Assembly: GCA_048772705.1 (NCBI GenBank)
Contig: JBLWGC010000035.1
Span: forward strand, 124,001-188,000
DNA from: Leidyana gryllorum EB-2025a
Lineage: Eukaryota; Protista; Apicomplexa
Direction of reading: 5' to 3'
DNA: 64,000 nt
Both the position numbers and the translations under genes were made by a program. Positions 15,967-41,457 of this stretch are shown here, one piece after another. Positions within the stretch are counted from its first letter, which is position 1. Each line of letters begins with the position of its first letter. The notes below the pieces were generated by a model, which saw only the letters and a program-made list of their open reading frames with translations, did no database searches and had not been told where the DNA came from.

Positions 15967-16039
15967 ATGGATATTTTGCTGGTGTGTTATATGGTGATGA
16001 GGGACAGCTTCGCTTCTATCGCTCTAAAATCCAAAAACT

Positions 16040-18386: not shown

Positions 18387-18421
18387 AGACCTGCAAAAAT
18401 TGTTCCACACACGAGACACTC

Positions 18422-19613: not shown

Positions 19614-22600
19614 TCAGAGTTGTAGTCTCAATCTATCGATCTGATCAAATCTCAGAGGGGATGAGGTGGACATTTTGAGATTGTCGTATGGTTGGGTGAG
19701 GTGTCGCGATGATGATGCTGCTGGTGGAGCTGCGGTTGTTGTTGTTGTGGTGATGACGGCATAAGGGTCGCGAGCTGTAGTGGCGTCTTGGCAACAATGA
19801 GCAAGGAACTCGTGATATATACGTTTGTTTTTGGCTTCTAGACTGAGTCTATTGGCTGCGGCCAGGAGAGGGCCGCTGATGGGTGGTGCATAAGTTCGAA
19901 TGAGTGGTGGGATGAGACAGGTGAAGATGATGGGGTGAGTGAGGAGGGCAGGAAGTTTTTGAGTGAGTTTGAAAGCCAGAATGACAGTGAGTGACTGGGT
20001 GATGGGGATGATAGCCCAGTTGAGGAGAGCGCTTAGAATGATGACTCTGAGGGCTCCATGGATGACTGGGAAGGCACCGCCGAGGTAGAAGATGAGGCAC
20101 AAGCAGAAGCAATTGAAGGCTGTGGATGTGACAATGAACTCGGCGATTTTGAATCTCTGTTTTCGCTGTTGATACAAGATGTGGGCTAATAGGCCATCTG
20201 AGTCGGTGTAGCGATCTTCGGGTTTGGGGTCAAAGCTGCAGTATCTCATAAGAAGGCGAAGGCAGATGACAGCGGCGAGAGTGCAGCCGAAAGAGAGGTG
20301 GGGAAGAGAGACGTGTCCGACTCCCATCCTTGCAGTGGGAGCAATGAGGGCTGATATGAAGGTGGCTGCACAGGCGACTTGGATAAGACAGAGGATCTGA
20401 GCCTCCATAATAGGTTCGACGAGATGTGCGACTCGAATAGCGGGATCTTTGAAGTGAGGTTGAAGAGGGTGCAATGATCTGGACATTGATCCCAGTAGAC
20501 TCCACCAGCGACGGTGGCAGACCTTCTGGAGAGCTGCCACCAGACGGACGATAGAGGGTGAGAAGTTTGGTTGAATGGTGTCTGGGTCGACTTGCATTGT
20601 CGGCAGAAGTTTTTGAAGTGGGGCAGGTGGGGGTGGTTGGGGATAGAGTGGGTAATTGAGGCGTGGGAGGAGGAGATCGTGAGTGCGCTGGGCGCCCTCG
20701 GCTGTTGGCCAGCCAAGTTTGACTTCAGCACAATTGTTGAGTGTAATACTGAGAGTGTAAGGATAGAGCGCGTGTAAACAGGATGCTGGCGAGGGCATTG
20801 ATGATCGGGGGTTGTTGAAGAACGGTCGACTTGAAAGTCTCATCGCAGTGATACACGAGAGAGGGATAGTGAGACAATTGATTTTCTCTCCACTCTGCCA
20901 ACCAGCAGGGCAGGTCTGTAGGGTTGGTGTCGGCCAGAAGGGGACAACACCGAGTTGTCTGAGCAGATCAGCCGGATCTTTCTGTACCAATCTGTAGGGG
21001 GACAGCACAGTTCCGCAATCTGTCTCCTCCACTCTGATAGTACTGCACGTCATGGCACCAGTGTGATGTTGGTGGAAGGAAGCTCCCAAGTGGGCTCCTT
21101 GTTGTTGTTGAGTATGGGCTCGACTTTGTGTTTGGGTGTGGAGGGCCATAGGGGGCAGGTGATTCAGCATCACAGGTTGAGACTGAGTGGCCCCAAGTTG
21201 CTCGCCGTCATAGGTACAGAGCATAGCATCCTGCACTCCGACAACCCTCTCGTCCGCCACCCGCAATTCCCGAAGATCCGCCAGACGCTGCCGACGTTTC
21301 TGAATTGGGAAGATGCTTCCATCAATCTTTGTATTGAGAGTCATCGCCAATCGGCGTGAGTTGTCAGGGGGGTTCTCGGGGTCTTCATCGAACTCTCCAA
21401 TTGAGCTCACGTCGTCAGCTTCGACTTCTTCACCAGCTGAATTGAGTCGTATCTCCGGAGGAATAGAGTCGTTTTCAGCCGGGGCCGTCAAGGACAATTG
21501 ATGAGGGAGTTCCGTTATTGTCATCGTTGCCGATGCCGTCGCGATTGCCCTCGTCACCATAGCTGGTGGCCCAAACAGTGGATCCACCGGTGGCACCGGG
21601 GCGGGCGGTAAGCCCAAAGTCGCGGCCAAATCTTCCAATTGAAAGTCGGTGTCCTTTGGTTCCAAGACTCGCATTGGATCTCCGGCCAGTCTCAGAACTT
21701 TGGGTCTCGAGTCGAACGTCATACTGTCATCTTCATCGGCTCGGAACACATCTCGGGCGTGGAAATTGGTCGACGAGGTTGGGATTCCACAAAGTTGGAG
21801 CTGAGCTGCAGCCGTCTCGTGGGGTTTTGGCATTCTGCACTCCACGCAAATCACTTCCTCCCGAATACCGTCTCTCGACACCGCTTCGCTCAGAAATACG
21901 TTGGTGGGGAATCGCTCTTCGAATAGACAAGTTGAGGCTGTGAAGGGTAATGTGACTCGTTTCAACGTGGGAGACGGCGTTGCGGGCTTTTCCAAATCTA
22001 AGAGAGTTCGCGCTTTTATCCATCGCTCGCCGGCGTTGTCGACTTCCGGAGTGCCCGCTGTAGGCGCGTCGCCCAGTGAAAGTTTCATCTCCAAGTACGT
22101 TTGCGCCTGCAGAGCGTAAGTGTATAAACCTTCGAGAGTCTCGAACCTCTCTGCTGTCAACTCGAACACGCAGGGAGACGAATTCTTCCTGTTTGACGGC
22201 ACAGTGAGGTTGAGTCGTCCGGAATTGTCGCCCGGAGGCGGTTGTAACCGGAACTCAGTGGACATGGAGCTGCCGCCTAAAGTATGCCGCTGAAGGTTAT
22301 CGACCCACAGATCCAATTTGAGGTCCAGAAGGGGCAATGCGATCAGTCCAAAGGCCGGTGCGCATTGACTAAGAATCTTCGCTTCGAGACTCATCAGACT
22401 CAGCGACTCGAAGAGATCGATGGGTAGGAAACATATCTCTTGAGTTTCAGGTCCGAACCAACAGAGGTATTCAGGATGACTTTTCGTCCCCGCGGCTTTT
22501 CTGCCCTTCGGTCTCGCAGACTTCTTCTTGGCCTTCGCGGAGTTCTTCTTGGTGATCCGTTGGAGACACACCCTGACAGCCCCGAGGGGCTCGAGAGTGT

Positions 22601-25600
22601 GAACGCTTCTTTCTTTTGGTGAGATTGTCATTGACTGCTGTTGGATCTGAAGATGACGAGTTGAGAGTCGGGCTGTGGTTTCGGCCCAGACAACAGCATT
22701 GCGTCGTTTGATCCGATTGTAATGTTTGTAGACGGCTCTGGTTCCGCTCTTCATATCAATTGTAACGTAAGCTTCAGTGGATCGAGCGTAAACGTCTGCT
22801 CCAGCGAGCACTGCGATTTCCCACGGTTCCAAGATTTTGATTTTTCCTCCGAGATGTCGGCTGACTCTGTATGCGACTCGGTTCTGATGCTCGCTGGCAG
22901 CGCTGGCGAGAGCCTCCTCGTTTGCTGTGGACTGGAGATTAGTGATGGCGCTAAAGGTGGTGTTGCCAAAGTCTTTCTGCCTGACACCCATTCTGTCTGC
23001 CCCCAATTGGAAGATTGAGGGGCAGAAACGGGCCGCGGCAACGAGTGACCGGCCATTGTAGGGATCCTTGCGGATGAGTGCCCGTGATTTGAGATGTCTC
23101 ACCACTCCCCCTGCGGGGTAACGAAGAAGAAGTACAGCGATAGCAATGAAAGTGACTATCGCCAAATTCATCGTCTGTTTGATGGCGTCTTTCGCCAAAA
23201 GAGCCACTCGCTGGGGGAACAGAGCGGGTGACACGGATGACAGCAATCCATAGGTATCGAAATAGATCTCTGTGACCACACTTCTGACCGAAAGCCCGAG
23301 AGCTTTAGCATCCATGTTGATCACAAAGTCGCTGAACCCGTGGGGATGAGGTCCGTTCCGGTTGCTGCGATATGGTACTGAACACTGCATAGTGGCTATA
23401 ACACGGTCAAAGTTTCTTGAGTCTCCTGCTAACACGTCTTTGATAGTCACCACATCACTTGGCGGTTCTGACGACCAGTGATCACCATTGAGTCGGATAT
23501 TGACGATCGAACACGTCGTTTCTGTGGAGGGGGGATTGAATGAACCCGTTCGGACTCTGAGGAATTGTTTGAGTGGCAGTTCCCCGAACTTGAAATCGAC
23601 AACGCGACTTCGAACATACGATTTCAAGATCTCTTCAACGAAATATATCAACTTTTTGAGGTCATCTTCGCTCAATGGGATCTCTCTCTGCAGGAATACC
23701 AATACCTCAGACACGTGGCTCTTCTCGCTCGCTGCTGCCAATGATCTCCTTATGAGACCTCTGCTCTCCCTCTTCGACTTGGGCGGCTGGGAAACCAGAG
23801 TCCCACTCAGCGTGGTGCTGCCGGCTGCCAACTCGGCAACGGCTGCAGCGCCATTGACAATCATATTGGGATCTTCGACCAGAGTTGTATCTGCGGTATA
23901 ATGGAACAAAGTGATTGGATTGAGTCGATTCAACGGGTGCAATGGATCCATTTTCATCTCTTCGACCAAATCTTCGTGAAGATTTGCGTCATCCTCGCCC
24001 GCTTTGACCACCCACGCGTGTAACGGAATCCAATCGCCCACGGCGATATCGTGTTTGATCTGCATTCGAGCGTCCACCAACTTGGCCAAATATTTCAGTC
24101 TCTCATATCCCTCCTGCACACCGCGAGGCAACGGCAAATCTTGTTGCTGAGCTTTCTCCAATAATGGGTAGAGGACATCAGACGACACGCGCGGTCGCTG
24201 ACCCTCCACAAGTTTCAGGAGACGCGCCGAAGCCCCAATGTCACTGTCTCTGGGCGGCGGAGGCTCGTCTCCTCCTTCCCCCAGATGATACACTTCTTGA
24301 CCAAATAACTGATTGACTCGAGTGCCTTCCCTCTGCAAAGCACTCAGAACACTTTCTCGTTGTTTCAGACAAAGATTGTCCAAATAGTCCTCAAATAGTG
24401 CGTGCTGCGCCTGCAATTCTGTGTCTGTCCTCGTATCTCTCGACTGGAGAGTCTCAGCTCCCTTTCCTTCAGCGGCACCAATCAGTGTTTGATACAATCT
24501 CTCATGCTGGTGTTCACTCAGATGAGTCACATTCACTGGATTCATCCACTCCATAATCTCAATATCTGTCAGCATTAACGCGTTCTCCGTGTCCGATAAG
24601 TCAATGATTCTCAACAAAACTGTCTCTTCATCGCCCGCGGGGCGCAGCTCGAAAGTTCGCGACTTTCCGCCTCCTATTCCGTACTTGTGCAATGCCTCTT
24701 TGCTTCCCTTCTTCGATCCGCCTTGGTGGGGAGCGAGCGGAATGGGCCAAATTGAGGTCCAATCGCCCACCCCCACATCGCTCTTCAACAAAGTCTTCCC
24801 ATTGGTGTACCAATCGATTCTTCTATTCGCCATCTGTTCACTCAGAAAGTCTGTTCTCAGCCTCATAGCCACACTCCAGGACATCTGGGGATCGTGACTC
24901 GCCACCACAGTCGCGTAAGGCTCAATCTCAACTTGAATGAGACCGTTCAGAGGGAGACGCATGAATGGCGAGTACTTTGATCTCAACCACCCGTAGGTCG
25001 CTCGACCATCGAATGATCTCAAAGTTTCGCGCTTATAAACATCCCTCGCCAAGTCAGCGAAACTTGAGAACGGTTTCTCAATCGATGTCACCAACACGTC
25101 ACCCCGAACACTCACTTCCGAACATGGGACATCCAGAATTCCCGGTTTCGACACTTGTGGACTGTATAACACCAATTCCATTGGACAAAGGGGCAAACGC
25201 GGGGCTCTTGGACTCTTTCGAGTAGTGATAGTCGCGAGCTTTCCCGATCCCATCAGTCGCAACGGCGGCGGTAATCGCTGCACATTGCTGGGACCAGACG
25301 CACTCCCACCAACTGATGGTCTCGGGTTCAACGCCGCCACTGCATTCCCTTCGCCCGGCTTTCCACTGATCACTTCTTCTACGTCTTCAGGGTGCTGTTG
25401 CAATGTCGCCCGATACACGTCGTGTTTTGGGCTGCGATATGTGATAGACTCCATCTTCGGGTTCCTCTCCAGGCCATACCAACTCCAGTATAGCATACTG
25501 CCGACCGCCAGTCGTTCACTCGCCGATCCCGGAGACTGTTTTGCGGCCCCACCTGCGCGAGCGTTGAGTGGTAAAACACAACACACCTCCCCTGGGGCTC

Positions 25601-28600
25601 TCAGAATTTCGGATTTCAGCGAGTCAATGTCCCACAGAGTCTCATTGGCCATATTCCGATTGACACACAAGACGGAAGACGAACGCCGTTCCTCTTCCGA
25701 GAGTGAAATCGGGGCCAGATTCTCTATGACAGACTGACTGCAATAGGTGGTCAACTTGGCAGTGTTATGGGCTGCGGCAGCGACCGCAGTCCTTCCGTTG
25801 GCGACAGCCGAGTTCGAGAATGAGGGGCGGATTCCAGATATGCTCAAATATGGATAGACCGGGCGCAGATTGAGGTTGGCTTCAATGTATGCATCAATTG
25901 AACGCACATCAGTGGCTCTGATCCTTATGAAAGGGTGATCGGCGAATTCCGATGACTGATAGACAGCCAATGCCTCAATGAACTCGAGAGGAACTTTGAT
26001 GTGAAGATGTCGCCCCTCCACCGACGAATGGACTGATAGATATTGACACAATCTGCTGTGATCAATTGATTGGATCTGATCACATTTCCACTCCCAATCG
26101 ATCTTTTGAGCTTCAGACGGGATTTCAGCCTCAGTCACACCAAGTCGGAGACCGAGGAACGAAGGACTGAGATGGGTCAGATCCGCAACCAGTCCTTCAG
26201 GGTTGAAAGCCCGTCCTCCGTTGTCGATCACACGGAAACCTGTCAAGCCATCAGAACCTTCGTACAAAACGTGCGAAGGCGGAGGTACGCCTACCGGGAG
26301 ATCCCAGTAAGCCTCATCAATTGCGTCCCCACCTCGAGCACTGCTGGTCACTGTCGCACCGTACAGCCGGGCTGGACGTTGCGGCAGTGCCAGTGTTCGT
26401 CGGTCGGGATCCGATCCAGCCCGATAGGTGACCCACACCCGGTTGAATTCACTGTTCCATCGCACATTGACTGCCTCTATCACTTCAGCTGCAGGGCCAA
26501 ACGACCGCTGAAAATCCATCAAATGGTCAATTTCCTCAAACGTCACCCAATCGGCGTCAGAAACTCGTTCAGTTGTAGTCGTTGTTGTAGAACTCGTTGA
26601 TGTTGTAGTGCTCCTTGTCATCATACGCGGTGGTGATGTACTCAGTGCGGTCGTCCTGCGGGGTTCCGCCATTGTCGTTGTTGTCTTCTTCTTCTTCTCG
26701 ATATCGCTCTCCAACTCAGCCGTCTGCTCACTTCCCGGCATCACAGCTCCCTGACTCAATATTCCATCATTCATTTCTTCCTCGAAAGCCTCAGCATCGC
26801 CAGTCTGACCATTCGTTGGCACGGCCGGATGTGCGGCCGTCTCCAGCGATTGTGGCTGTAGTGGTCCAGTGGGCGTTGTAGTGGTCGTTGTAGTCGTCGT
26901 TGTCGTTGTAGTCGTCGATGTCGTTGCGTCGTTGCCTTTCGGCGCGGATGTCCTCCCCGGTTTTTTCTTCCAACTCTTGTACCACGCTTTGGCGCCGCTG
27001 AAAGGGTCAAATAGCCGCCGAAGAGGGGCTTCTGGTTCCTCGGCGGTGTTCACTGCTTCGGTCGTACTGTGGACGACAGCAGCTTGCGGAGTCGATTCAC
27101 GGGGCGCCGACGGCGGGGCTTTGGCCTCAGAACGTCGGTTGGCCCTGGTTTGCCGTCTTGGTGCCGTCTGGGCTTCCCCTACTGCCGTAGCGACCTCCAC
27201 CAAAATGTCGTCCCACAGTGGATCAGTCCAATGATCGTCTCCTCCACTGCCGTCTTGGTGAGGGTACAACAGATTGAGAGCCGTCGCAAACCTTTCTCTG
27301 GCAATGCCTCCTGTGTTGTCAGGGTCGATGAATTGTTCCCAGGTGACGATCGGTACTTCAGTAGTGGGAGTCACTGGTTCAGACATCTCGGCAGCTGACA
27401 ATTGACGGAGAAGGTATCCTGATTTGCTGCACGAGAAACCCACTCTTCCCACCGCTGAGTGGAAATTGAGCACAGCTTCATCTGAGAGATATCCTCTAAA
27501 CAATAAGTGGTTGCGTCGCATCACTAAGCACAATTGACTCAGAACGTCGGGATGTTGGGCTCCCAGCAGTGATTCGGCGCCGGTCAGCGAGTAACACCTT
27601 TGACTCTCAATCGTTGCTCTGATATCGTTCAGTGATGGACTGAAGAATCGCAACGTGGGACAGACAGGAACTCCCAACATCATCAGATCTGTGGCCTCCA
27701 TTGGGAATTTGGCTGATCGCGCAATGGCTGTGTGCAACACTGCGTCTGTCACATTCAGTGATTCGTCGCTCTCGCCAGGAAGACTCCGCAGTGGTGTGGC
27801 CGGCGAATGGACGAAAGGCAGATAGAACCCCACACTATTCAGCAGTGTGGGATCGGGTAAAGCGATCCAGTGCATCATATTGCGTCCTAATCGAATCTCA
27901 CACTTCTCTGTTATCAGCTGTTGGATTACGGGCATCAGAATCTCAGTCCAGGGAAGCCGCTCTTGACGTAGATAGGCCACTGGCCCATATCTGTCCACCA
28001 GCCGATCCCGCACCCGACTATGGAGCTCACGACATAACTGTGGCGTGGACAATTTCGGCTGACTGTGTTCAATCGTCCACAACAGTGGAGCCCAAACCTC
28101 AATGTCCCTCAGCAAAGATAACGTACGGCCTCTGTCACTCTCGGGCAACCAGTTCAAACCCCGTGATGACTTGTACGATAACGGACCATCAGGCAAGACA
28201 ATCCCGCAAGCCATGAAGACAGGCGGAGAGTGCTGTTCTTCGGAGTCGGCTGACTCCTCATCAGACTCCATCAGCTTCTCGACAGCATAGGTCAATACAC
28301 TGTTCTTGCGTTTGTCATCGCCCAAGTGCCACAGGGTCGCCCGAGTCTGAGGCAAATTCTTGATGTTCACGATGTGTTTGGGAAGAAAGACGCTGCTGGT
28401 GTTGTAACCCAACAGTACTTTGGTGGGATGTGGTTCGGATCCGAGATGGTAAATGGCCAAAGTATTGTTCTCCTGACGGACACCAACTGATGAGCACACG
28501 TGTTCGTCTTCAGCTTCAGTGTCATCAAGATCAGCCTCCGTAATGAGGTCGAACTCCATTATCTGCTCTCTGGGAACCCGCAGGTCACTCAACATCACTT

Positions 28601-31600
28601 TGGCTCCGTTCGGCAATGCACCGACCAATTGAAGCCGCAATGAAGTCCACGACCTGGGGACGGACCCCAGAGGGTCCTCCGTAAAAGGCCAAGGCCCAAC
28701 GAAGGCTTCATCCTTCTTGACTGTCGAGGCAATCTGCTGTTTTTCAATCATATCATCCGGAGTTATAATAAGATCAGCTGTCTGTGGAAAGTATGGAAGT
28801 GGACTCTGACCCCTGTTGAAGTGTAATTGGACGTTTGAGTTCTGAACGGAAAGGCGAAGGCCCTCCACCTTATCGAGACGACTCAGCTCGCTCATACTCC
28901 GAACTGGAACGTGAGGTAGCGTCCACAGATCTATGAGCTCAGACACAGAAGTGGCACTCGATACATCTAGTCCGTACTTGGAGGCAAAGGTTTGGTCGAG
29001 GACAACCTGCACAACAGAGTGGTGCGGTATGAAGAGGAGATCAAGTGCACGGGCGGTGTAACGGCGTCGAGATGTCATCGAGGAGTTTGCAGGAGTGGCT
29101 GTCAACGGTAAGGTGACGGTGGCACCGTTGATGGAGCTGATGGTGACATTGAGAGCGATGAGATTGGGTTCTGGGAGGTCTCGGTTGCCTATGGTATCGA
29201 CGAGGTCGAGGGTGACATTGGGTTTGATCCAACCCCATCTGGAGTCGAGATCGTGGACAGTGGCGAAGAGTTTGAAGGGAGCGCGGGTGAAGCCGGTGAC
29301 TGTTGGATGATTGGTGACAGTTTCATGGAGGACACCCCCGATGTCGACAGAGAGACGACTCCATCCGTCATCGGGCAGTCGTCTGATCAGTCCCACAGAT
29401 CCTTCGGTTCCAATGTATTCCGGACAGCCGACACTCTGAGCGGTGTGTACCCGATTGGGGAACTTTGAGATGTGTCCGACGGTGGTCGGACAGATCTGAT
29501 GAGGATCGTAGAGGAGTTCTGGATCTTCCACACTGTCACTGTATCCAACGGTGAGACTGATTGGCTTTGCGCGAGTCCGAAGACCGTCAGCGTCACCCTC
29601 AACAGTCATCCGCAGATTCCCTGTGGATGAGCTGAGGGTGTTGGCCAGAGGCACGAGGCCAGTTTCCAGCACCACATCATCTTCAGTTTGGGCTTGACTG
29701 CCCACAGATATGACCGGCATCCCATTGACCATCAGTAGCCACCCTTCAGTGTCTCTGGCGACATCCAGCAGCTCGCCGCATGGGGGTGTGAACGTCTCGA
29801 CGTCTGAGTGGGGAGAGGCTTTGAGTCCGATTGTGAACCAAAAACCCTTCTGACTGCACGGAATGAGGAGCGCGTTTCCAATGAGTGACCAACGAGGGGC
29901 TGAGTCCGACGGCCAAGTCATCAATAAGTGGGATTCCAACGGGGCAATGTCCTCAACGTCTGGTGCACTCTTGTTGTAATAGCTGAATCCATGGAACGCC
30001 CCAAAATCTCCGGTGCGATATGCAATATTGGTCATACCCTCGCCTGATTCCATCTTGAGGCCGTTGAGATCCGACACTGTGTTGTAAGCGATTGTGGGCT
30101 TCATGTTTCCAGACCGGTCGAACTCCGACACGGCTGTCGATGTCAAGGGCAACACAATTCGTGATACCAACCAGTCGTGCCACAGAAGCGTACAGGTGAG
30201 GGCCTCTGTGTTGGGGACCGATCGAGGCTTTCTGACACTTCCAGTTGGGATTTGGAGTGTGGCATTGAAGAATGGAGTGTCAGGAGGTGGGATGGTTTGA
30301 CGAGCGACAGGAATCAAAGTGGCCAAATTGCCACCCGCGGGTGTTTTGAAACATTCAATATCCATTGGATCTGTCGGTAAAGGGCCGTCAGAAACCATTC
30401 GGAGGAGAACGGGTCCTCCAACGGCACCAGATTTGGGTTCCAGATTTCGGAAATACGACAGCTCCTCATCGAATCGCACCTCAACAATCTGATCACCGAT
30501 CAGACTACCTCCAGTTTTGAGCGCAGCAGGGCGACGTCGTATATTGGAGGACATTGTCGACGAATTAGCCGCCGCACCGGGTGGTGAAGATGAGACGGCG
30601 GCTCCTTCACGGTCACAATGCACCGCAAAGTCTGTAGCGGTAGTCCCCTGGTCGCTGCGAGCGAACACTCCACTAATGGACATTGAGAATCGTTGACCTC
30701 TCAACTCATCTGGGGTCAAATTGACGAGTGGATAAGTGAAGGTCGACGTCACAAATTCGTCAGTGGCATTGACAGAGTGTGCCCGCAATAGCTCCTGCTG
30801 CTTGCCGCCATTAAGGATCATCCACACCTGTTTAGGAGGTGTATCGCCGTATGCGACGGGGCTGCGGAGATGAATGGTCGCCAATGTTGAGATGGAACGC
30901 GGCCGAGGATCGGTGTCGGGACTCAGATCGAAGGTACAGCTGACTTGGTGTGTGAGTGGTCTCTTGGGACGGGGAGTAATGAGTGGGCGGGTTTCGATGA
31001 TATCGGTATTCTTGAGCAAACGCTGTTCGTCCTCGAGTGTTCTGAGCAATGAGACCTTTCCCGATCCGTCGGCTATGAATAGACTGCGGGTATACGCAGG
31101 TAAGCTCGTGACGAGACCGCGAACGCGCCAAGTGTTATTGAACCGGCGTAAATCCCGCCATTGCATTGTGTGCTGATATGCAGTGGTGTTCTTCCTCCTG
31201 GCGGCTAAGGCTTCAGTGCAACTGAGATACAGTCGGCAGAATTCGGCTTCCATTGTGGTTGAGGTTCTCTCGAGTGTGTCTTCTTCTTGTTCGCGACAAT
31301 CGTAGAGGCCACGATCGAACTCGAGGTTATGATGGCTATCCGGACAGACAGAGAAGCGCAGTAGGCGATTGAAGTCCGGTTCGTCTCCATCTCCATAGTC
31401 CTCGAGCCGATTTGTTGAGGATATCTCAAACTCGGTCTCCCAAAGGGGTCTGGATTTGACAGCTGGCCACAGCACACTCCGGCTGGGCGCTAAGGCGATC
31501 TGATCAAAGGTGAAGAGCTGTTGACTCTTTTCGCGAGCCGCTTGGCGAAGTTGTCGACTTCTCAAGGAGCCCGGGCGCATGGCGTCGAACAGTGGGGATT

Positions 31601-34600
31601 GACTCTGTATTTTCAAGCGAAAGCAGTTGTTGTTAATGCCTTGTTGCCATTCTTTCCTGGATCGCACCACCGTCACCAATGATGCTTTGTGGTATGCCTC
31701 AGCGTTACAGAGTTCAATCACCCATTCACCGTGAGATCTTAAGAGGGTGTAATGATCAGCGGCCACCTGAATCGGTAGCTCGAAAGTGTACCGGCTAGGA
31801 TCTTCGGGACCCATCCCAACCAAAATCTTTCCCAACACGGAGCTGTATGAGGTTCTTCGACGTCGAATCCGCACAACGTATTCGCCAGCAGGGCAAGTCC
31901 AAGTCTGCGTAGGGGCAGTGATGTTCAGCTTGATGCTTCTTTCACCCTCCACAATAAGTTCTCCCACTAGCGGGTCTGGACTCTTAGGTGTATAGTGGCC
32001 TCGCGACCCCCGGAGAGCGACGTCCCCCCGCTCACCGGCGGGGTAGTCGTCGGTCTCGCGAAGCCACACATCTGGATGGTTGTTAAAGACTCTCACGAGA
32101 GGAGGCTGGAGAGACAGCGATGTTCGTTCGTACTCTGACATGCGGAGAAACTCGTCTCGGACGAGTAGCACGCCACCATATCCACTCTGAGCGAATTCAT
32201 TGTCGAACGCCGTGAAGATAGTCGGAGAGGTATCTGCGAGTTCCTCATTCTTGGCTCCCGAAAGCCCCACGGTCTCCATCAGAGACGCAGAGTGTGCAAG
32301 GACGCCAGGTGGGGTCTGAACCGGTGGCAGGGGGTTCATTTTCTGCCGATCGCTCCCATATATATCGTAGAATCCCAGTATGTCCCTGCTCATCATTGGA
32401 CTGCGCTGAGTAGGAGCTGCGAGGCTTGGTTCAGTCTCCCCCGTCGATACGTAGAGGAGAGACGCCGAATGGTGACCACTGTGGTAGCGAGCGGCGGGTA
32501 TCTGACATCGATGGCCCAAAGCTTTGAAGAAAATCTCAGCAGAGTCAGCAGATGTCGGGAAATTGAGTTTCATTCGACTCAGAGCTTTGTGTGTGCTTTT
32601 CGTTGGGAAGCAAAGGAACTGCGTAACGCCAACGGCGCGTTCGAACTCGAGCGGGAGTCGATCATCCACAACACCGTTGCGGTGATCAGACTCATAATCG
32701 GCAGATTTCGTAATCTGTTTGATCGTCTCCGGGGTGTAAACAAAGGCGTTGTCTCGGAACTCCACAGAGACGATGTGTCTCAGGACATTGTCGTGAGACC
32801 TCGGGACCGCGTAGATTCTGTACTGGTTGTGCGCGTCAACATCAACGGCAAAACGCATGCTTCCAGTCCAGTCACCAGGTGTGCGATGGTAGTACGCTCT
32901 GTCAACCCATCCCAGATAGATGGCTGAAGTCATTGTAGAGGTTGACGGGTCGGTATCGTCTCCAACCATAAACATGTCATAAGCTTCGATGTCTTCCTTC
33001 TCGAGTCTTCCGTCCTCAGTGGATTCCACAACGTTCAAGGCGCCCCAAATGTGTCCCGGACGCATATCTACGTCTCGGAAATTGATCATTGAGGGTCTGA
33101 ATACCTTCCTGTATTTGCCTTTGGTACAAATGAAACTCTTCGTGATTTCCCCTTCCAACTCCCAGTGGGGCCCGGTTCGGATCCCCGGCCTCAGAGGGCG
33201 CTCCTCGAACCGCTTCAGCGCCTTCTCCTCCATATATCCCCATATATGACAGATGATCGTCGAGTCCGTGAACGGATAGGGCCGTTTGACGAAGTCCAAT
33301 GTGAAGAAACTGCAATGAATCCGCAGTGTATCGCACCGAGCCCGACACGAAGTATCGGAGAACTTGCCTCTCTCGAGAGGGTAAGTTCGGCGGTCGATCT
33401 CTTGGGGCTCTATGCGGCCATTGCTGAACCCTCTATCGCGACTGTAAGCGTAGGACCGCTGCCACTGATTCTGTTGCATAGAGCTGGGATCAAACCGGGC
33501 CTCGAAACAGGCGTCCTCGTGCGCTATATAATCATAGACCGTGCCGACCAAATTACTTGGCCTCGCCTCGGGTGCGTCTTCCTCCGATAGTAGAAAAGTC
33601 TTGAACTCTTGACTGCTTGGAACGTATTTTCGGACTCCCCTGACGGGATGAGGGATAGTAAAGTTGAGTGTCCGACTACAAGTTCCGTGTATCCAGTCTC
33701 TGGGTGTGAGAACGAGGGTCCAGGACTGGTCGCAGACTTGAATTTGGTCGGCTCGAGGACTTCGATCGGCCATTGTCCTGTCACGAAAGATCGCAGACGT
33801 AGCCTCGAGGGCTATATCTGCGCCCATTTCCCAGGCTCTGACACCTGCTCTGAAGGAAAAGTAATTATCGATAATCTCAAAATGCAATTGGATGGTAAGG
33901 TGGTTGAACTCATCTCTCGTCCCCAGCACAAGCTCCACGGGTGTACGACTTTGATCAGGTGTGAGAAAATTGAAGTTGAAGGGCGATTTGAAGGATCTGG
34001 ACGGGAATGGTAAGTCCGGACACGATAAAATTAGGCCTCCCATCGATAGGAACGCAGGGTCGGGTGCAAAGTCACAGTTGATTCGGTCGACGTAAGTTTC
34101 ATGCTGCACCACCCCTAAGATTTCAACGCTTGCGAAAAGGCGGATCACATTCGTCAAGGACCCCTTTGGGGCGAGCCAAATAGCGTAACCCTTGGGCAGT
34201 TTGGGATGTGTCTTCCAATCTACAAAGTTGTAACGAATATAGAAGCCGTACCGATCCCAATCCATATTGGTGTCCGCGTAAATGTCCGGATGGAAGATCG
34301 TCAAACGTCGACTGCTCTTCGGCAAAGAGTCTTTGACCAAATCAAAGATCGGTGCGTAAGTCACCACTCTATGCTTGTGGTCCAGGTGGTACACAATGCC
34401 GAAGGAGTCCGCCAGACTCTCATCCCACATCTTTGTTGACATTGCTGGCACCTTTATCAGCAAACGATCTGTGCCGTCCTTGTCGGCAATAACGCCTTCG
34501 GCGGTCAATTGGTGACGCTGTCGAAGTCGATCAGTCAGAAAAACTTGATAGCTTCCAGTGAAAGATGGTCGCCGATCTTTATCGAGCGCCTCATCCGATC

Positions 34601-37600
34601 GGGCTGCCGGAGCCTCGACCACTATCGTACCCGAAATGATATACGGCTCCGGCGATTGGTCCATAAACAGCGCTGCAGAAGTAGTCACATCGATCTCACC
34701 CGACTCAAACAATGCTAAATGACGCGTCAACGGATTCCGAATCTTTGACCTCGCGAACATGCCACGGTGACTCTGTGTTGGATGAAGGAGCAGAGTGAAC
34801 CCGCCACTGATTTCTTGCGGGTATGAAAATGTCGCCGAAACTCTCGAGTTCTCCACAGGGCTCAAATAACTGTTCATCAGCGCACCGTTCACCAATACCC
34901 TCGCCAAAGATGTCCCATTCGTCCTTGCCTGCTCACTCTTGTCGGTGAAACTCACTGTGAAAGAATGATCTGCAGATTTAAAGCTGTATATCGCCATATC
35001 AAAATCTTCCACTGATGTCGCTATCCCTTGATCCCTCGACAACGTTTGTGGCGTTGCCCACTGATCGTGTTCTGCTGACGTCGCAACCGCTCCTCGCAGT
35101 TTCTTCTCTTCGCTCTCGTAGTCCACCATCCACTTTCGGCCCCCGACTTCTTTGTACCCTTTTATCTCCTCGTCACAACGTTTCCGGACGATAGCCTCCG
35201 GACTCCAAACGTTTTCGGGTACTCTCCCGAAGGCCACTCTGTGGACGATGTGGCAGGACCCACTCGAGCTGTCGAGATTCAGCAGAAAATCGGTAGCCTC
35301 CATTGGCAATTGCGCAGCAATAGTCACACGCTCCTCCGCCAACCCGAAAATCCGGTCTTCTTTGCCCAACGAACGTACCGAACGCACTCCATTGCCCGAG
35401 ACAGGAATTGTTCTTGTTGAGTTGTTCCCATCTCCCTCCACAATTTCGATGGAGCTCTCCACCCGTAGCACATTGAGTAATCCCGACTTGGCCTGAGCAA
35501 TATCGACAGCAGCACTCACCTTAAAATCTACTCCGGCTGCATTCGCGCCCCCACCCACCGTGGGTAGCTGAGAATAATGGACTATGTGTGGCTCAGACAG
35601 AAGCAGAAGATTGTCCAGTGAAGGAGGCTGCGGACCCACAGTCAATCCAAGCAATTCGGTGGCTGCGTTGGAGACATCACCTTTAGCGCCCTGGGCACAC
35701 GTCATTGAGCCCGAAATCACACCCTCCTGATCCGCGGCATTGTACACATTGGAGAACAGCACACATCGAGCTTTTTGATCCTGTGTCGTAGGACGCTTGC
35801 TGACTTTGTTGTGCGTACGTTTCTCTGATGTCGCAGACGGCTGCGGAGGGGTCAGATAGGGCATAAATGCCCAGCCGGCGCAAATGTCAATCTCCAAGCA
35901 TTGTTCCAAACACTCATGATAGTCCGTGGGCGAGCCCTCCATGGTGGGAATTTGTTCACCGAACAACGTTCGGCCGTGTTTGACACATTCGGTGGGCGAG
36001 TTGTGTATCAAATCCTCAATGAAAGCCGATTCTATCGCGGATGATGAGTACCGACGACTGCCGTGATACGGCGTGATGACTATTTTGTCCTGATCAGGAG
36101 TTTCGAGGGCGAGTGAAACAATACGAGTGAGATCTGGGGCCTCCTCGAGCAGCTCCTGTTTCCGGACCTCGAAGAGGGGTCGAACAAAGTTGGGACTGTG
36201 ATGCTCCACGACAATTCTGTCAGCCAAGTAAGAGTTATCGGTCCATATTCGTGTGGCAGGATGGATTGTGAGTGGACCTTGAACTCTACGAGGCCGTGGA
36301 TCAGTGTCGCGGAGGTTGAAGGTGAGGGAGAAGGGCTGCGTCTCGTACGCATCTGTAACCTGAACATACAACGGGGTGGTGGACTCGCCCAGATCTGTCT
36401 CCGTGGTGACCCTCAAAGTTTCGGTGGTATTCTGTCCAAGAGAATAATAACAAATGGGGATAGAGACACGATTGTTGGCATCAAGAGAGGGCAGAGCGTA
36501 GTGTTCCAGGAGGACATTACCGTCAGCGTCGCGCACATTGACCGCAGAAGCGTTAGTGGAGACGAAATTGGGTACCGCTTCCAGTACAATGGGGCCACAC
36601 AGTTTGGTGGCAGTACTGGACTCATCGGTGAATTTTCCGGTGAAGAAGGGGAAGGGGGTATCCGGCTGGCGACCGTCTTGTATTGTGAAAGCCACGTGGT
36701 GATAGTCTTCAGGCGATGGCTTAAGCAGGTCTGGGTGATCGAGCGCAAAGATGAAGGGTTCTTGAAGAAGCTCTGTTTCCGGTGTCAGGAAGGCGAATAT
36801 GTCAACCTGGCGGTTGACTGCATTAAGATATATTGCGGGAAGTTCAAAGTGAGCAGTAGTTGTGTTGGGGGGTATGACATCCTCGAGCCATAGGACAGGA
36901 CCACCGACATACGACGATTTGATCGCGACCAGGACGGTGAGGTGGTCGGTGGGGGATGGATTGGCAACTGAAACAGAAAGATCTCCTTGTACAACTTTGG
37001 TATCAGGTAACATGTCTTCAAAGCGTACATCGACGATGTATCGTTGATGTCCACTCCGCATGATCTCCAATGTGTCGTTTGACACATATGAGAAGGCAGG
37101 CGCCAGATCGGCTGGTAGTAACCACTCGGTAGAGTCCTTGTCAGGGTAGCTGTTAACACGTATTTCTACAGCACTCTCAGAAGCAACTTCCGGTCCCAAC
37201 CGGATGAGAGCGGTGGCAAGTTCCTCATAAGCGGGCACGTGCAGCAGCCCGCCCTTATCCAGTTGGAAGGCTGATGACGACATTAGTGGAACGTACTGAT
37301 TTTTTCCGAGCCATAAGGCCATATTGATGGTGAAGAAACGCCCTCGTATCCTTTGCGCACACGCGCTCTCAAATTGATGATTGTCACTGATCGTTGGGGC
37401 GTGCTTTATCAGCCAGGAGGCCAACCAGTCATGTACAGATGTTTGGTTGTTCATCGGCGGTGGAGACACCAAACGCCAGTTCACACAATCTTTGAGAGGT
37501 ACGATGCCGTCTGAAGCGACCTGCTTGACTGAGACCGATCCCCAGACATCGGACTGGGTGGGATGGGGAAAGAAGTCAATCCCATCAATCGGACGCGGTT

Positions 37601-38369
37601 TACCCTCAGTAGCACGTCCACCTGCCGCTGCCGTTGTCTCGCGAACGCGAAATGTACACTGATCTGCTGCTGTGGGCCGAATATCCAGTTTGGACACAAT
37701 AGATCGACTTCCAACGCCTCCAAACTCAGCTGTGCCCAAGACAACCGTTGGGGGAGGAAATGCCGCCGCCTCTGACGCCGCTGGACAATCCGCCCCCTTC
37801 AGTGTCACCTGGTGGTGCTGATCTGTCCCATTCCACAGGGCTACAGATTCTGCTGAGTGTACGCGATCCGCATATTGAGGCACAGCTGACGACACAGGTT
37901 TATCAGTGCATTCTAGGTACCCGGGGAAGCCATCTTCGGCGCAAGGGGCGAACTCCATATACAAGCATCGATACGAATCTTTTTCCGTCGCAATTGGAGA
38001 ATTGAGCGAAAGTTCAACCATAGAATGGCTCCGGTCGAAGATCAAGTCCAGCTGTCGGTGAAAGGGTGTGAAGGTTGTAAACTCTACCTTTTGACCAGTT
38101 CTATCCCGCAAATAGCGATAGAAGCAGTTATCATAGCAGTCAACGTAAGCGGAGGATACATCAACATTCCCAGGGATCTGGACGTCCCATATCTTTGGTT
38201 GACAATAAGTCACTCTCTGGGACAATGAATCCGACTGTCGGGGAGTCAAGAGCCATTTCAAGGATCCGAAAAAACCACCTTCGCCAACCAAGTGACGCGA
38301 ACTCAATTGGAAACTGGTACACGTCGTAATAATACTTAGCCAGATTGACCAAATTCTCAAAGATGACAT
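19614..38369 (-). CDS. Giant (6251 aa) polycystin-1-like multi-pass surface protein with PAN/Apple domains
   Basis: Uninterrupted 18,756-bp ORF. Signal peptide, two PAN/Apple Cys patterns, Thr tracts, GPS-like motif, TM at about aa 5067, four further hydrophobic helices at about aa 5970-6140. ORF reality is near certain; the family call is moderate. Confidence 0.8.
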   Translation of the reverse strand: MSSLRIWSIWLSIITTCTSFQLSSRHLVGEGGFFGSLKWLLTPRQSDSLSQRVTYCQPKIWDVQIPGNVDVSSAYVDCYDNCFYRYLRDRTGQKVEFTTFTPFHRQLDLIFDRSHSMVELSLNSPIATEKDSYRCLYMEFAPCAEDGFPGYLECTDKPVSSAVPQYADRVHSAESVALWNGTDQHHQVTLKGADCPAASEAAAFPPPTVVLGTAEFGGVGSRSIVSKLDIRPTAADQCTFRVRETTAAAGGRATEGKPRPIDGIDFFPHPTQSDVWGSVSVKQVASDGIVPLKDCVNWRLVSPPPMNNQTSVHDWLASWLIKHAPTISDNHQFESACAQRIRGRFFTINMALWLGKNQYVPLMSSSAFQLDKGGLLHVPAYEELATALIRLGPEVASESAVEIRVNSYPDKDSTEWLLPADLAPAFSYVSNDTLEIMRSGHQRYIVDVRFEDMLPDTKVVQGDLSVSVANPSPTDHLTVLVAIKSSYVGGPVLWLEDVIPPNTTTAHFELPAIYLNAVNRQVDIFAFLTPETELLQEPFIFALDHPDLLKPSPEDYHHVAFTIQDGRQPDTPFPFFTGKFTDESSTATKLCGPIVLEAVPNFVSTNASAVNVRDADGNVLLEHYALPSLDANNRVSIPICYYSLGQNTTETLRVTTETDLGESTTPLYVQVTDAYETQPFSLTFNLRDTDPRPRRVQGPLTIHPATRIWTDNSYLADRIVVEHHSPNFVRPLFEVRKQELLEEAPDLTRIVSLALETPDQDKIVITPYHGSRRYSSSAIESAFIEDLIHNSPTECVKHGRTLFGEQIPTMEGSPTDYHECLEQCLEIDICAGWAFMPYLTPPQPSATSEKRTHNKVSKRPTTQDQKARCVLFSNVYNAADQEGVISGSMTCAQGAKGDVSNAATELLGLTVGPQPPSLDNLLLLSEPHIVHYSQLPTVGGGANAAGVDFKVSAAVDIAQAKSGLLNVLRVESSIEIVEGDGNNSTRTIPVSGNGVRSVRSLGKEDRIFGLAEERVTIAAQLPMEATDFLLNLDSSSGSCHIVHRVAFGRVPENVWSPEAIVRKRCDEEIKGYKEVGGRKWMVDYESEEKKLRGAVATSAEHDQWATPQTLSRDQGIATSVEDFDMAIYSFKSADHSFTVSFTDKSEQARTNGTSLARVLVNGALMNSYLSPVENSRVSATFSYPQEISGGFTLLLHPTQSHRGMFARSKIRNPLTRHLALFESGEIDVTTSAALFMDQSPEPYIISGTIVVEAPAARSDEALDKDRRPSFTGSYQVFLTDRLRQRHQLTAEGVIADKDGTDRLLIKVPAMSTKMWDESLADSFGIVYHLDHKHRVVTYAPIFDLVKDSLPKSSRRLTIFHPDIYADTNMDWDRYGFYIRYNFVDWKTHPKLPKGYAIWLAPKGSLTNVIRLFASVEILGVVQHETYVDRINCDFAPDPAFLSMGGLILSCPDLPFPSRSFKSPFNFNFLTPDQSRTPVELVLGTRDEFNHLTIQLHFEIIDNYFSFRAGVRAWEMGADIALEATSAIFRDRTMADRSPRADQIQVCDQSWTLVLTPRDWIHGTCSRTLNFTIPHPVRGVRKYVPSSQEFKTFLLSEEDAPEARPSNLVGTVYDYIAHEDACFEARFDPSSMQQNQWQRSYAYSRDRGFSNGRIEPQEIDRRTYPLERGKFSDTSCRARCDTLRIHCSFFTLDFVKRPYPFTDSTIICHIWGYMEEKALKRFEERPLRPGIRTGPHWELEGEITKSFICTKGKYRKVFRPSMINFRDVDMRPGHIWGALNVVESTEDGRLEKEDIEAYDMFMVGDDTDPSTSTMTSAIYLGWVDRAYYHRTPGDWTGSMRFAVDVDAHNQYRIYAVPRSHDNVLRHIVSVEFRDNAFVYTPETIKQITKSADYESDHRNGVVDDRLPLEFERAVGVTQFLCFPTKSTHKALSRMKLNFPTSADSAEIFFKALGHRCQIPAARYHSGHHSASLLYVSTGETEPSLAAPTQRSPMMSRDILGFYDIYGSDRQKMNPLPPVQTPPGVLAHSASLMETVGLSGAKNEELADTSPTIFTAFDNEFAQSGYGGVLLVRDEFLRMSEYERTSLSLQPPLVRVFNNHPDVWLRETDDYPAGERGDVALRGSRGHYTPKSPDPLVGELIVEGERSIKLNITAPTQTWTCPAGEYVVRIRRRRTSYSSVLGKILVGMGPEDPSRYTFELPIQVAADHYTLLRSHGEWVIELCNAEAYHKASLVTVVRSRKEWQQGINNNCFRLKIQSQSPLFDAMRPGSLRSRQLRQAAREKSQQLFTFDQIALAPSRSVLWPAVKSRPLWETEFEISSTNRLEDYGDGDEPDFNRLLRFSVCPDSHHNLEFDRGLYDCREQEEDTLERTSTTMEAEFCRLYLSCTEALAARRKNTTAYQHTMQWRDLRRFNNTWRVRGLVTSLPAYTRSLFIADGSGKVSLLRTLEDEQRLLKNTDIIETRPLITPRPKRPLTHQVSCTFDLSPDTDPRPRSISTLATIHLRSPVAYGDTPPKQVWMILNGGKQQELLRAHSVNATDEFVTSTFTYPLVNLTPDELRGQRFSMSISGVFARSDQGTTATDFAVHCDREGAAVSSSPPGAAANSSTMSSNIRRRPAALKTGGSLIGDQIVEVRFDEELSYFRNLEPKSGAVGGPVLLRMVSDGPLPTDPMDIECFKTPAGGNLATLIPVARQTIPPPDTPFFNATLQIPTGSVRKPRSVPNTEALTCTLLWHDWLVSRIVLPLTSTAVSEFDRSGNMKPTIAYNTVSDLNGLKMESGEGMTNIAYRTGDFGAFHGFSYYNKSAPDVEDIAPLESHLLMTWPSDSAPRWSLIGNALLIPCSQKGFWFTIGLKASPHSDVETFTPPCGELLDVARDTEGWLLMVNGMPVISVGSQAQTEDDVVLETGLVPLANTLSSSTGNLRMTVEGDADGLRTRAKPISLTVGYSDSVEDPELLYDPHQICPTTVGHISKFPNRVHTAQSVGCPEYIGTEGSVGLIRRLPDDGWSRLSVDIGGVLHETVTNHPTVTGFTRAPFKLFATVHDLDSRWGWIKPNVTLDLVDTIGNRDLPEPNLIALNVTISSINGATVTLPLTATPANSSMTSRRRYTARALDLLFIPHHSVVQVVLDQTFASKYGLDVSSATSVSELIDLWTLPHVPVRSMSELSRLDKVEGLRLSVQNSNVQLHFNRGQSPLPYFPQTADLIITPDDMIEKQQIASTVKKDEAFVGPWPFTEDPLGSVPRSWTSLRLQLVGALPNGAKVMLSDLRVPREQIMEFDLITEADLDDTEAEDEHVCSSVGVRQENNTLAIYHLGSEPHPTKVLLGYNTSSVFLPKHIVNIKNLPQTRATLWHLGDDKRKNSVLTYAVEKLMESDEESADSEEQHSPPVFMACGIVLPDGPLSYKSSRGLNWLPESDRGRTLSLLRDIEVWAPLLWTIEHSQPKLSTPQLCRELHSRVRDRLVDRYGPVAYLRQERLPWTEILMPVIQQLITEKCEIRLGRNMMHWIALPDPTLLNSVGFYLPFVHSPATPLRSLPGESDESLNVTDAVLHTAIARSAKFPMEATDLMMLGVPVCPTLRFFSPSLNDIRATIESQRCYSLTGAESLLGAQHPDVLSQLCLVMRRNHLLFRGYLSDEAVLNFHSAVGRVGFSCSKSGYLLRQLSAAEMSEPVTPTTEVPIVTWEQFIDPDNTGGIARERFATALNLLYPHQDGSGGDDHWTDPLWDDILVEVATAVGEAQTAPRRQTRANRRSEAKAPPSAPRESTPQAAVVHSTTEAVNTAEEPEAPLRRLFDPFSGAKAWYKSWKKKPGRTSAPKGNDATTSTTTTTTTTTTTTTTPTGPLQPQSLETAAHPAVPTNGQTGDAEAFEEEMNDGILSQGAVMPGSEQTAELESDIEKKKKTTTTMAEPRRTTALSTSPPRMMTRSTTTSTSSTTTTTTERVSDADWVTFEEIDHLMDFQRSFGPAAEVIEAVNVRWNSEFNRVWVTYRAGSDPDRRTLALPQRPARLYGATVTSSARGGDAIDEAYWDLPVGVPPPSHVLYEGSDGLTGFRVIDNGGRAFNPEGLVADLTHLSPSFLGLRLGVTEAEIPSEAQKIDWEWKCDQIQSIDHSRLCQYLSVHSSVEGRHLHIKVPLEFIEALAVYQSSEFADHPFIRIRATDVRSIDAYIEANLNLRPVYPYLSISGIRPSFSNSAVANGRTAVAAAAHNTAKLTTYCSQSVIENLAPISLSEEERRSSSVLCVNRNMANETLWDIDSLKSEILRAPGEVCCVLPLNARAGGAAKQSPGSASERLAVGSMLYWSWYGLERNPKMESITYRSPKHDVYRATLQQHPEDVEEVISGKPGEGNAVAALNPRPSVGGSASGPSNVQRLPPPLRLMGSGKLATITTRKSPRAPRLPLCPMELVLYSPQVSKPGILDVPCSEVSVRGDVLVTSIEKPFSSFADLARDVYKRETLRSFDGRATYGWLRSKYSPFMRLPLNGLIQVEIEPYATVVASHDPQMSWSVAMRLRTDFLSEQMANRRIDWYTNGKTLLKSDVGVGDWTSIWPIPLAPHQGGSKKGSKEALHKYGIGGGKSRTFELRPAGDEETVLLRIIDLSDTENALMLTDIEIMEWMNPVNVTHLSEHQHERLYQTLIGAAEGKGAETLQSRDTRTDTELQAQHALFEDYLDNLCLKQRESVLSALQREGTRVNQLFGQEVYHLGEGGDEPPPPRDSDIGASARLLKLVEGQRPRVSSDVLYPLLEKAQQQDLPLPRGVQEGYERLKYLAKLVDARMQIKHDIAVGDWIPLHAWVVKAGEDDANLHEDLVEEMKMDPLHPLNRLNPITLFHYTADTTLVEDPNMIVNGAAAVAELAAGSTTLSGTLVSQPPKSKRESRGLIRRSLAAASEKSHVSEVLVFLQREIPLSEDDLKKLIYFVEEILKSYVRSRVVDFKFGELPLKQFLRVRTGSFNPPSTETTCSIVNIRLNGDHWSSEPPSDVVTIKDVLAGDSRNFDRVIATMQCSVPYRSNRNGPHPHGFSDFVINMDAKALGLSVRSVVTEIYFDTYGLLSSVSPALFPQRVALLAKDAIKQTMNLAIVTFIAIAVLLLRYPAGGVVRHLKSRALIRKDPYNGRSLVAAARFCPSIFQLGADRMGVRQKDFGNTTFSAITNLQSTANEEALASAASEHQNRVAYRVSRHLGGKIKILEPWEIAVLAGADVYARSTEAYVTIDMKSGTRAVYKHYNRIKRRNAVVWAETTARLSTRHLQIQQQSMTISPKERSVHTLEPLGAVRVCLQRITKKNSAKAKKKSARPKGRKAAGTKSHPEYLCWFGPETQEICFLPIDLFESLSLMSLEAKILSQCAPAFGLIALPLLDLKLDLWVDNLQRHTLGGSSMSTEFRLQPPPGDNSGRLNLTVPSNRKNSSPCVFELTAERFETLEGLYTYALQAQTYLEMKLSLGDAPTAGTPEVDNAGERWIKARTLLDLEKPATPSPTLKRVTLPFTASTCLFEERFPTNVFLSEAVSRDGIREEVICVECRMPKPHETAAAQLQLCGIPTSSTNFHARDVFRADEDDSMTFDSRPKVLRLAGDPMRVLEPKDTDFQLEDLAATLGLPPAPVPPVDPLFGPPAMVTRAIATASATMTITELPHQLSLTAPAENDSIPPEIRLNSAGEEVEADDVSSIGEFDEDPENPPDNSRRLAMTLNTKIDGSIFPIQKRRQRLADLRELRVADERVVGVQDAMLCTYDGEQLGATQSQPVMLNHLPPMALHTQTQSRAHTQQQQGAHLGASFHQHHTGAMTCSTIRVEETDCGTVLSPYRLVQKDPADLLRQLGVVPFWPTPTLQTCPAGWQSGEKINCLTIPLSCITAMRLSSRPFFNNPRSSMPSPASCLHALYPYTLSITLNNCAEVKLGWPTAEGAQRTHDLLLPRLNYPLYPQPPPPAPLQKLLPTMQVDPDTIQPNFSPSIVRLVAALQKVCHRRWWSLLGSMSRSLHPLQPHFKDPAIRVAHLVEPIMEAQILCLIQVACAATFISALIAPTARMGVGHVSLPHLSFGCTLAAVICLRLLMRYCSFDPKPEDRYTDSDGLLAHILYQQRKQRFKIAEFIVTSTAFNCFCLCLIFYLGGAFPVIHGALRVIILSALLNWAIIPITQSLTVILAFKLTQKLPALLTHPIIFTCLIPPLIRTYAPPISGPLLAAANRLSLEAKNKRIYHEFLAHCCQDATTARDPYAVITTTTTTAAPPAASSSRHLTQPYDNLKMSTSSPLRFDQIDRLRLQL
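26869..26925 (-). repeat. Poly-Thr (mucin-like) coding tract
   Basis: Mixed ACG/ACA/ACT/ACC codons encode ATTSTTTTTTTTTTTTTP. A second Thr-rich tract lies at about 26570-26690. Confidence 0.85.
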
Positions 38370-40897: not shown

Positions 40898-41437
40898 CGC
40901 GCCCCCAAGTTTTCTGAGGCGTAAAAAATACTTCTACTGCGATGCAGATGCTCGCTCAGGTGGTCCAACCCAAATTGCCCCAAGATGAACCTGCCATCCT
41001 TCTTCGGGTATGGGTTGCACTGATCGTGCTGTTGATGGGTAGTTTGCATATATTTTACCGCAAAAGGGTCAATCGACGACGTGCCAAGTAAGAGGGAATG
41101 AATAATGTCTGTCACTTGGTGAACCACAGAGAAACTCGAGTGTACGGAGCTTGAAAAGAAAGCATGGCTTCCCTTACGCCTGAAATAACGTCAAGTCGCT
41201 GGCTCGACCGCACCGCCTGCAAAGACCTCCTAGCCACCAAACATCAACGACCATCAGTCCAGTCGACAACCTTCAGCCAGGACAATGAACAGTCCATCCC
41301 ACCAGATGAAGAGCTAACCCAGACACCCGTGAATCCCAGTACCAGCAACATATCTCAGAGAATCGTCCAACGTCAAAAAGCAGATACTTATCCCTATGTG
41401 CTGTCCAGACAGCACGAGATCACTCAATACCTGTAAG

Positions 41438-41457
41438 GTTGCACACGTGTGTGCAAC
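41438..41457. promoter_or_regulatory. Inverted repeat GTTGCACAC-gt-GTGTGCAAC
   Basis: 9-bp perfect arms filling the gap between the stop at 41436 and the ATG at 41458. Confidence 0.5.

Follow-up and report, generated by a model that had tools for sequence, protein, structure and literature searches.

A giant gregarine protein with a degenerate GPS motif and five predicted membrane helices as a probable, strongly diverged and channel-less polycystin-1-type receptor

A 64,000-nucleotide stretch of the genome of Leidyana gryllorum EB-2025a (GenBank assembly GCA_048772705.1, contig JBLWGC010000035.1, positions 124,001 to 188,000 of the forward strand; here called the window, in whose numbering positions are given) contains a single-copy open reading frame (ORF) of 6251 codons at 19614..38369 on the reverse (-) strand, the strand of all features of this protein described below. 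It encodes a predicted type-I-like multi-pass membrane protein. On balance we favour the reading that this giant protein is a strongly diverged, channel-less contact receptor of a gregarine, built on the polycystin-1 plan of a GPS motif and five helices. Its membership in the polycystin-1 type appears likely by layout and GPS motif, not by sequence score. An earlier note, made from the DNA letters, had proposed a PKD1-like receptor; of this proposal the GPS motif, the layout and the absence of a channel hold, whereas homology of transmembrane helices 2-5 (TM2-5; z 0.1-1.0) found no support. No full GAIN domain, REJ or PLAT was detected either.

Translation from 38369 to 19614 gives 6251 amino acids and one stop, the terminal one, as that note had claimed. 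The frame is open over 6253 codons and its start ATG is the first after the preceding stop. In the remaining five frames stops occur along the whole length, at 5-28 per 500 codons, and codon statistics are uniform across the ORF, both ends included, which together indicate coding sequence. The gene had also been called intronless: the DNA has no stop codon in frame and the splice donor word GTRWGT is rarer than expected (9 versus 18), but in-frame introns may be present. It is very improbable that the ORF is not one protein, through in-frame introns, polyprotein processing or rare expression. Neighbouring genes do have numerous short introns, and the ectodomain carries several basic sites such as RRL; against this, 18.7 kb stay stop-free where a stop turns up every 20-100 codons in other frames, codon statistics are uniform, donor words are depleted, and the parts of the product, signal peptide first and membrane helices last, follow one another coherently.

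The evidence that carries the assignment begins with a degenerate, two-cysteine GPS motif at residues 4953-5023 (23301..23513), which reads C4953 (position 23513), W4965-SSE, C4996 and F-S-D-F-V-I-N-M-D, whose F-S ends the HGFS of residues 5010-5013. It was scored with three GPS profiles made from about 130 real GPS loci, which had been pulled from viral and metagenome contigs by a degenerate pattern. Aligned end to end with gaps, all profiles place their top site among the 6251 residues at 4924-5025, ending at residues 5023-5025. In the 180 residues before TM1 the site reaches z 3.2-4.2 (p 0.003-0.01); of the 122 real decoy windows, not one scored as high. The hhalign score is 15.5 against a null of 9.4±1.9 (null maximum 15.0), in the same register. 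The GPS-like motif of the earlier note is therefore present beyond chance and in the register claimed, and a GPS motif near TM1, a feature of the polycystin-1 family, is found here in degenerate but statistically supported form. C4953 and C4996 are the sole cysteines in residues 4668-5115, and both align with GPS cysteine columns; the GPS of polycystin-1 presumably keeps only one such pair as well. Many of the short, exon-bounded GPS matches used resemble animal host DNA, although a primate-repeat word check flagged none, and the GPS result is unchanged without the animal-like exons.

The candidate cleavage site, H-G-F/S (F5012, S5013; 23331..23342), departs from the consensus HL/T or HL/S (PMC9672506). 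The nucleophile and the Phe that follows are kept, with Gly at -2 and the His shifted from -2 to -3. Because of this shift self-cleavage is doubtful, and it is the weakest step of the proposal.

The layout of the membrane part can be compared with about 20 intronless GPS proteins fetched from protist and viral contigs, which share a common order: GPS, 36-61 residues, TM1, a loop of 100-900 residues, two pairs of helices and the end of the protein, without a channel. One of them also carries REJ. A TM2-3 profile was built from 23 long fetched ORFs and a TM4-5 profile from 19. The former has as its signature an invariant His, R-x-D-P or T-R-x-Q, F-I-T-A-L-L-Y and a Pro in TM3; that of the latter is Y/F-G, W..S and Q/E-P. 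Since the top PDB match of the TM2-3 profile is human polycystin-1 (E 9e-5), these proteins are, judged by sequence, a real and widespread channel-less polycystin-1-like family. The brown-algal Esi0130_0068 is similar to channel-less REJ/GPS proteins with five helices (PMC4700764). TM2-5 lack a Pfam model in all three protist members scanned, so this family is largely invisible to annotation. About a dozen IMG/VR giant-virus contigs (L031-L041, L162, L163; 23-420 kb) encode proteins of about 1200 residues with a canonical GPS and this layout; they contribute to the TM2-3 profile that matches human polycystin-1, and some of them may be host DNA. Further protist members, with loops of up to about 900 residues, lie on metagenome contigs L043, L062, L066, L090, L106, L117, L118 and L149 (guanine-cytosine content 0.60-0.65).

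The giant protein has the same five-helix GPS layout. TM1 (residues 5068-5086; 23112..23168), its most favourable helix by hydropathy, is followed by six Lys/Arg and starts 56 residues past the candidate cleavage site; a worry voiced earlier over a GPS-TM1 distance of about 55 residues can be dropped, given the 36-61 residues of channel-less family members. After a cytosolic stretch of about 900 residues come TM2 (5990-6012) and TM3 (6022-6044; together 20238..20402), then TM4 (6076-6100) and TM5 (6105-6134; together 19968..20144), with G-A-F-P between the latter two and P6122. A weak hydrophobic stretch at 6139-6159 (19893..19955) may form a sixth helix or else be re-entrant or amphipathic. 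The total is thus five helices, at most six, arranged 1+2+2. The helices align with the fetched family in the expected order, with F-I-S-A-L opposite F-I-T-A-L. Shared with the family (for example L134, L053, L090, L106 and L031) are the GPS-TM1 distance, the long loop, the TM2-3 and TM4-5 pairs and the lack of a channel. By contrast, the family has a canonical four-Cys HL/T GPS, for which it was selected, and the giant protein two Cys and H-G-F/S; no REJ, which one scanned member has, was found in the giant protein, which carries a 5000-residue PAN/mucin ectodomain and does not score against the family helix profiles.

The segment before TM2 (20430..20516) contains H5952-RRWWS and H5967-P..F-K-D-P, the latter in register with the family's invariant His and R-x-D-P, not above the null. 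The His of H-RRWWS had been read as the PKD1 motif. The residue that matches the family's invariant His is probably H5967 instead, and the H..WWS and G..FP motifs by themselves reach p 0.02-0.04 with patterns fitted post hoc.

The cytosolic loop (20403..23111) contains a basic patch, linkers rich in Pro and Gln, and two PH-like segments, which end at residues 5422 and 5910; it has no Pfam match. The alignment of a PH profile made from four sequences stops, in either segment, at the predicted helices; the second scores z 2.2-2.3 (p about 0.03) and the first is not significant. The channel domain PF08016 was found neither in the protein nor in the genome, where genes match exon by exon. The five-helix, channel-less topology proposed earlier is thus borne out by hydropathy and by this search, as are the positions of the signal peptide, C4953, HGFS, TM1, the long cytosolic stretch and the four further helices.

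Several results weigh against a polycystin-1-type assignment. Against whole-protein shuffles the GPS score reaches z of just about 1.6-3, one decoy in 15,000 residues equalled it, and Pfam PF01825 (GPS) has no match in the protein or the genome. A full GAIN domain spans about 300 residues, a helical subdomain A and a 13-stranded subdomain B. The helical-looking segment at residues 4620-4815 or so (23925..24512) is, by sequence pattern, a candidate subdomain A, but the strands upstream of the GPS gave no signal (profile z 0-0.8); a complete GAIN domain is at most a candidate here. Two AlphaFold single-sequence models have a predicted local distance difference test (pLDDT) of 51 and, for the GAIN/GPS region, 37, too poor for fold testing. 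The membrane helices do not stand out by sequence: TM2-3 score z 0.5-0.7 against shuffles that keep hydrophobic patches (2.8-20 for true members), TM4-5 score z 0.1-1.0 and are not above shuffles in a low-power test where divergent true members reach just 1.0-1.2, hhalign of the helices against the family gives E 0.3, and the near-invariant TM3 Pro is missing; of 19 pairwise TM4-5 comparisons, one gave z 4.9. No Pfam or PDB match to PLAT follows TM1, no Pfam match to PKD lies in the protein, REJ (PF02010) has no match in the protein or the genome, where extreme divergence could mask one, and a search of the genome turned up no TRPP partner. No orthologue was found in the searches described below, and localisation, ligand and output of the protein are inferred.

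The negative TM2-5 and upstream GAIN tests are what one would expect if the protein were an unrelated, lineage-specific giant multi-pass adhesin or coat anchor, a passive host-glycan tether whose likeness to GPS and polycystin-1 is coincidental and whose juxtamembrane fold is SEA-like (ferredoxin). We consider this unlikely. A beta-alpha-beta-beta-alpha-beta reading of residues 4886-5000 is indeed possible, the helix at 4900-4922 being strong, and the weakest structural and sequence matches there include the N-terminal half of the GPR110 SEA domain (Z 2.8) and PII proteins (E 0.14). These matches, the hints of a SEA domain (ferredoxin-like fold, G/SVVV site), are at noise level, and Pfam has no SEA match. 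A ferredoxin fold would probably place the two cysteines at opposite ends, unpaired, and would account neither for the landing site of every GPS profile nor for a helix spacing that matches the GPS family. The SEA fold was at first favoured over GPS and was demoted to a rival after the GPS profile tests.

The GPS is much better supported than the transmembrane part. A real GPS could be joined to a membrane part that is not of the polycystin type, in a receptor that sets off apical secretion and is either CRMP-like or otherwise a distinct alveolate GAIN protein. Tetrahymena CRMP1/2 set a precedent, with GAIN by HHpred, five predicted helices and control of exocytosis (PMC9670195). With these CRMPs and Toxoplasma CRMPa/b the giant protein shares its size, multi-pass topology, lectin-type modules and proposed host-contact sensing. 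However, the CRMP core consists of two EGF-like domains and helices, nine of them in apicomplexans (PMC9815656, PMC9670195), with EGF-like and Cys-repeat modules by the helices. The giant protein (1.6% Cys) has no EGF or ephrin-receptor-like Pfam match and no Cys-repeat run before the membrane, and a recognisable CRMP is already known from Gregarina niphandrodes (PMC9815656), one in number. CRMP membership was rejected on the two Cys in residues 4668-5115, the lack of EGF and the lack of nine helices, and we regard this kind of receptor as improbable.

An adhesion G-protein-coupled receptor was rejected because the helices are arranged 1+2+2 with a 900-residue loop after TM1 and are not seven in a row; fetched seven-helix GPS proteins show evenly spaced helices. 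Toxoplasma TRPPL-1/2 are polycystin-related apicomplexan membrane proteins with a PKD channel domain, PC2-like (PMC8216714), and TRPP channel membership was rejected since the giant protein has no such domain. Polycystin-1 itself spans the membrane with 11 helices, six of which make up a PC2-like channel part, and carries PKD repeats, REJ, GAIN and PLAT (PMC9672506). The giant protein shares with it a very large adhesive ectodomain, a GPS-like motif, TM1, the position of a cytosolic lipid-binding part and the order of TM2-5; it differs in having five helices and no C-terminal six-helix channel domain, and PH-like segments where REJ and PLAT are not detected. In short, it resembles the N-terminal half of polycystin-1 and departs from the family in REJ, PLAT, the cleavage triad and the channel.

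The ectodomain of about 5050 residues begins with a signal-peptide-like N-terminus (residues 1-20; 38310..38369), a hydrophobic stretch behind a basic residue. An F-x-D-x-D..G-x-hydrophobic motif recurs in at least seven copies, at residues 450, 580, 686, 1235, 1764, 2483 and 2640; a profile seeded with four copies recovered three others, above the best of 30 shuffles. The putative beta modules are placed at 36690..37028 (residue 450), 35991..36638 (a tandem at 580 and 686), 34335..34673 (1235), 32751..33086 (1764) and 30120..30932 (2483 and 2640); residues 650-705 match 2447-2502 with E of about 1e-4. These modules may resemble beta-sandwich repeats of dinoflagellate surface proteins.

Apicomplexan adhesion modules had been predicted for the ectodomain, and this is borne out for PAN/Apple domains with the six-Cys pattern and its C-x3-C-x5-6-C core, the first by profile and the second by pattern. 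PAN domain 1 (residues 795-891, six Cys; 35697..35987) matches Pfam PAN_4 at E 0.0023, below the cut-off, and scores 3.5 bits with a profile of 19 PAN domains from the same genome, where 200 shuffles reach at most -0.3 (p<0.005). PAN-like domain 2 (residues 1621-1748, core 1675-1707; 33126..33509) has the core C-x3-C-x6-C-x2-F..C and is missed by the own-genome profile. By pattern, two PAN cores are seen where 0.001 are expected. A possible galectin-like beta sandwich was noticed by eye at about 1075-1232 (34674..35147), with a second candidate at about 2800-2915; neither has a Pfam match, and neither the second nor a piece spanning the first has a PDB match. Further on (26505..27323) a degenerate EF-hand-like loop (3683-3702), recognised by eye, precedes two Thr-rich mucin-like stalks (3760-3935) and a second half EF-hand-like helix (3938-3955). 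The EF-hand-like pair thus seems to be parted by about 240 residues that hold both stalks, on the extracellular side.

PAN cores and Thr-rich stalks are shared with apicomplexan PAN/Apple microneme adhesins and gregarine PAN-mucins, and host-cell binding by PAN domains is known from TgMIC4 (PMC2575384). The genome holds at least 19 PAN_4 matches, and a cluster of at least nine PAN-domain matches with an extended Cys pattern lies at G000:C230:776500-796400. Two giant PAN-mucin ORFs (G000:C230:131387-142171, 3595 codons, with a His/Pro-rich tail at its end, and G000:C194:79828-88491, 2888 codons) consist mainly of Thr/Glu tandem repeats. These two, the largest of those checked, are secreted PAN-mucins, lack a multi-pass tail and are otherwise dissimilar to the giant protein, and were rejected as its paralogues.

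The genome comprises 15.5 Mb in 237 contigs and carries a eukaryotic 18S gene with a very short internal transcribed spacer 1 (ITS1). Two inverted ribosomal DNA units (G000:C73:1-6159; L003, L004) have an ITS1 of 70 bases and a 5S gene between them, with a tRNA at the contig end. The earlier note's view of an apicomplexan-type host is upheld: because the best named matches of the adjoining M20 peptidase are Gregarina, Protomagalhaensia and Blabericola (41-44%), the host of the giant gene is most likely a gregarine. One further sequence and three proteins of about twice the peptidase's length, filed under plant genomes, rank above these matches. An intron-rich gene with short exons at 16960-18419 (-) resembles Leo1 of the PAF1 complex by eye.

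Searches of the own genome with four queries returned self-matches only, and at the sensitivity reached the giant gene is single-copy. A word search with residues 4850-6200 and 575-735, phmmer of residues 4945-6144 against 1.84 billion representatives, the metagenome contigs and sequence searches of protein segments against the PDB gave no homologue; an exact look-up was blank, and the GPS region has no match in the ESM Atlas. A language-model comparison sets TM2-5 beside hypothetical proteins of ciliates (0.75), which is no more than a lead. These blanks are no proof of novelty. In a syntenic relative (contig L006 of SRR31860986) identity is as low as 21% even for the formin FH2 domain, which explains the failure to find a homologue of the giant protein. 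This contig is syntenic with window positions 9669-16023 and 38528-50075 and stops about 30 nucleotides past the neighbouring DnaJ/ZUO1-like gene, about 160 bases from the start codon of the giant gene. Gene order is kept except for a breakpoint between about 16030 and 50080; an inverted segment, with the giant gene inside it, would fit this pattern. The relative apparently has fewer introns, and in Gregarina niphandrodes no synteny was found at the M20 gene.

We propose a mechanistic model in which the polycystin-1-type receptor would be secreted to the parasite surface, probably where the host gut is met. Host glycans would be bound by the PAN modules and perhaps by the galectin-like ones, which the beta modules, seven or more, and the mucin-like stalks would hold out from the cell. 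The GPS and stalk would then relay binding or pull to the five-helix bundle. As the protein has no pore of its own, it would signal via the cytosolic loop rather than by ion conduction. The PH-like segments of this loop may play the part of PLAT in polycystin-1, as binding sites for phosphoinositides or partner proteins. Alveolate CRMPs link contact with the host to apical secretion (PMC9670195), and by this analogy contact-triggered secretion or anchoring would be the likeliest output.

The earlier description of the system as undescribed was too strong, as GPS proteins with five helices and no channel are frequent among protist and giant-virus contigs, and the five-helix GPS layout, including that of the Tetrahymena CRMPs, has been published in outline (PMC9670195, PMC4700764). 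New, if confirmed, would be the apicomplexan occurrence, the size, the lectin and mucin ectodomain and the PH-like segments that replace PLAT. Our literature search found no report of a GAIN/GPS protein for any apicomplexan, and the alveolate cases it found are ciliates only (PMC3321182, PMC9670195). Tentatively, Apicomplexa could have in the giant protein their first GPS receptor of the polycystin-1 type, a host-attachment or force sensor independent of TRPP that combines an ancient, channel-less five-helix chassis with microneme-type lectin modules and has PH in place of PLAT. Other gregarines and Cryptosporidium may hold orthologues that have diverged just as far and gone unnoticed.

Canonical adhesins are poorly conserved in gregarines (PMC9250747), and a GPS receptor with lectin modules offers a concrete, single-copy candidate for how a gregarine attaches to and senses the host gut. 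If the assignment is true, the N-terminal five-helix half of polycystin-1 would be able to act as a channel-less receptor unit, which would bear on the role of that half in animals. The same idea is suggested by how widespread five-helix GPS proteins are in the contigs of protists and giant viruses.

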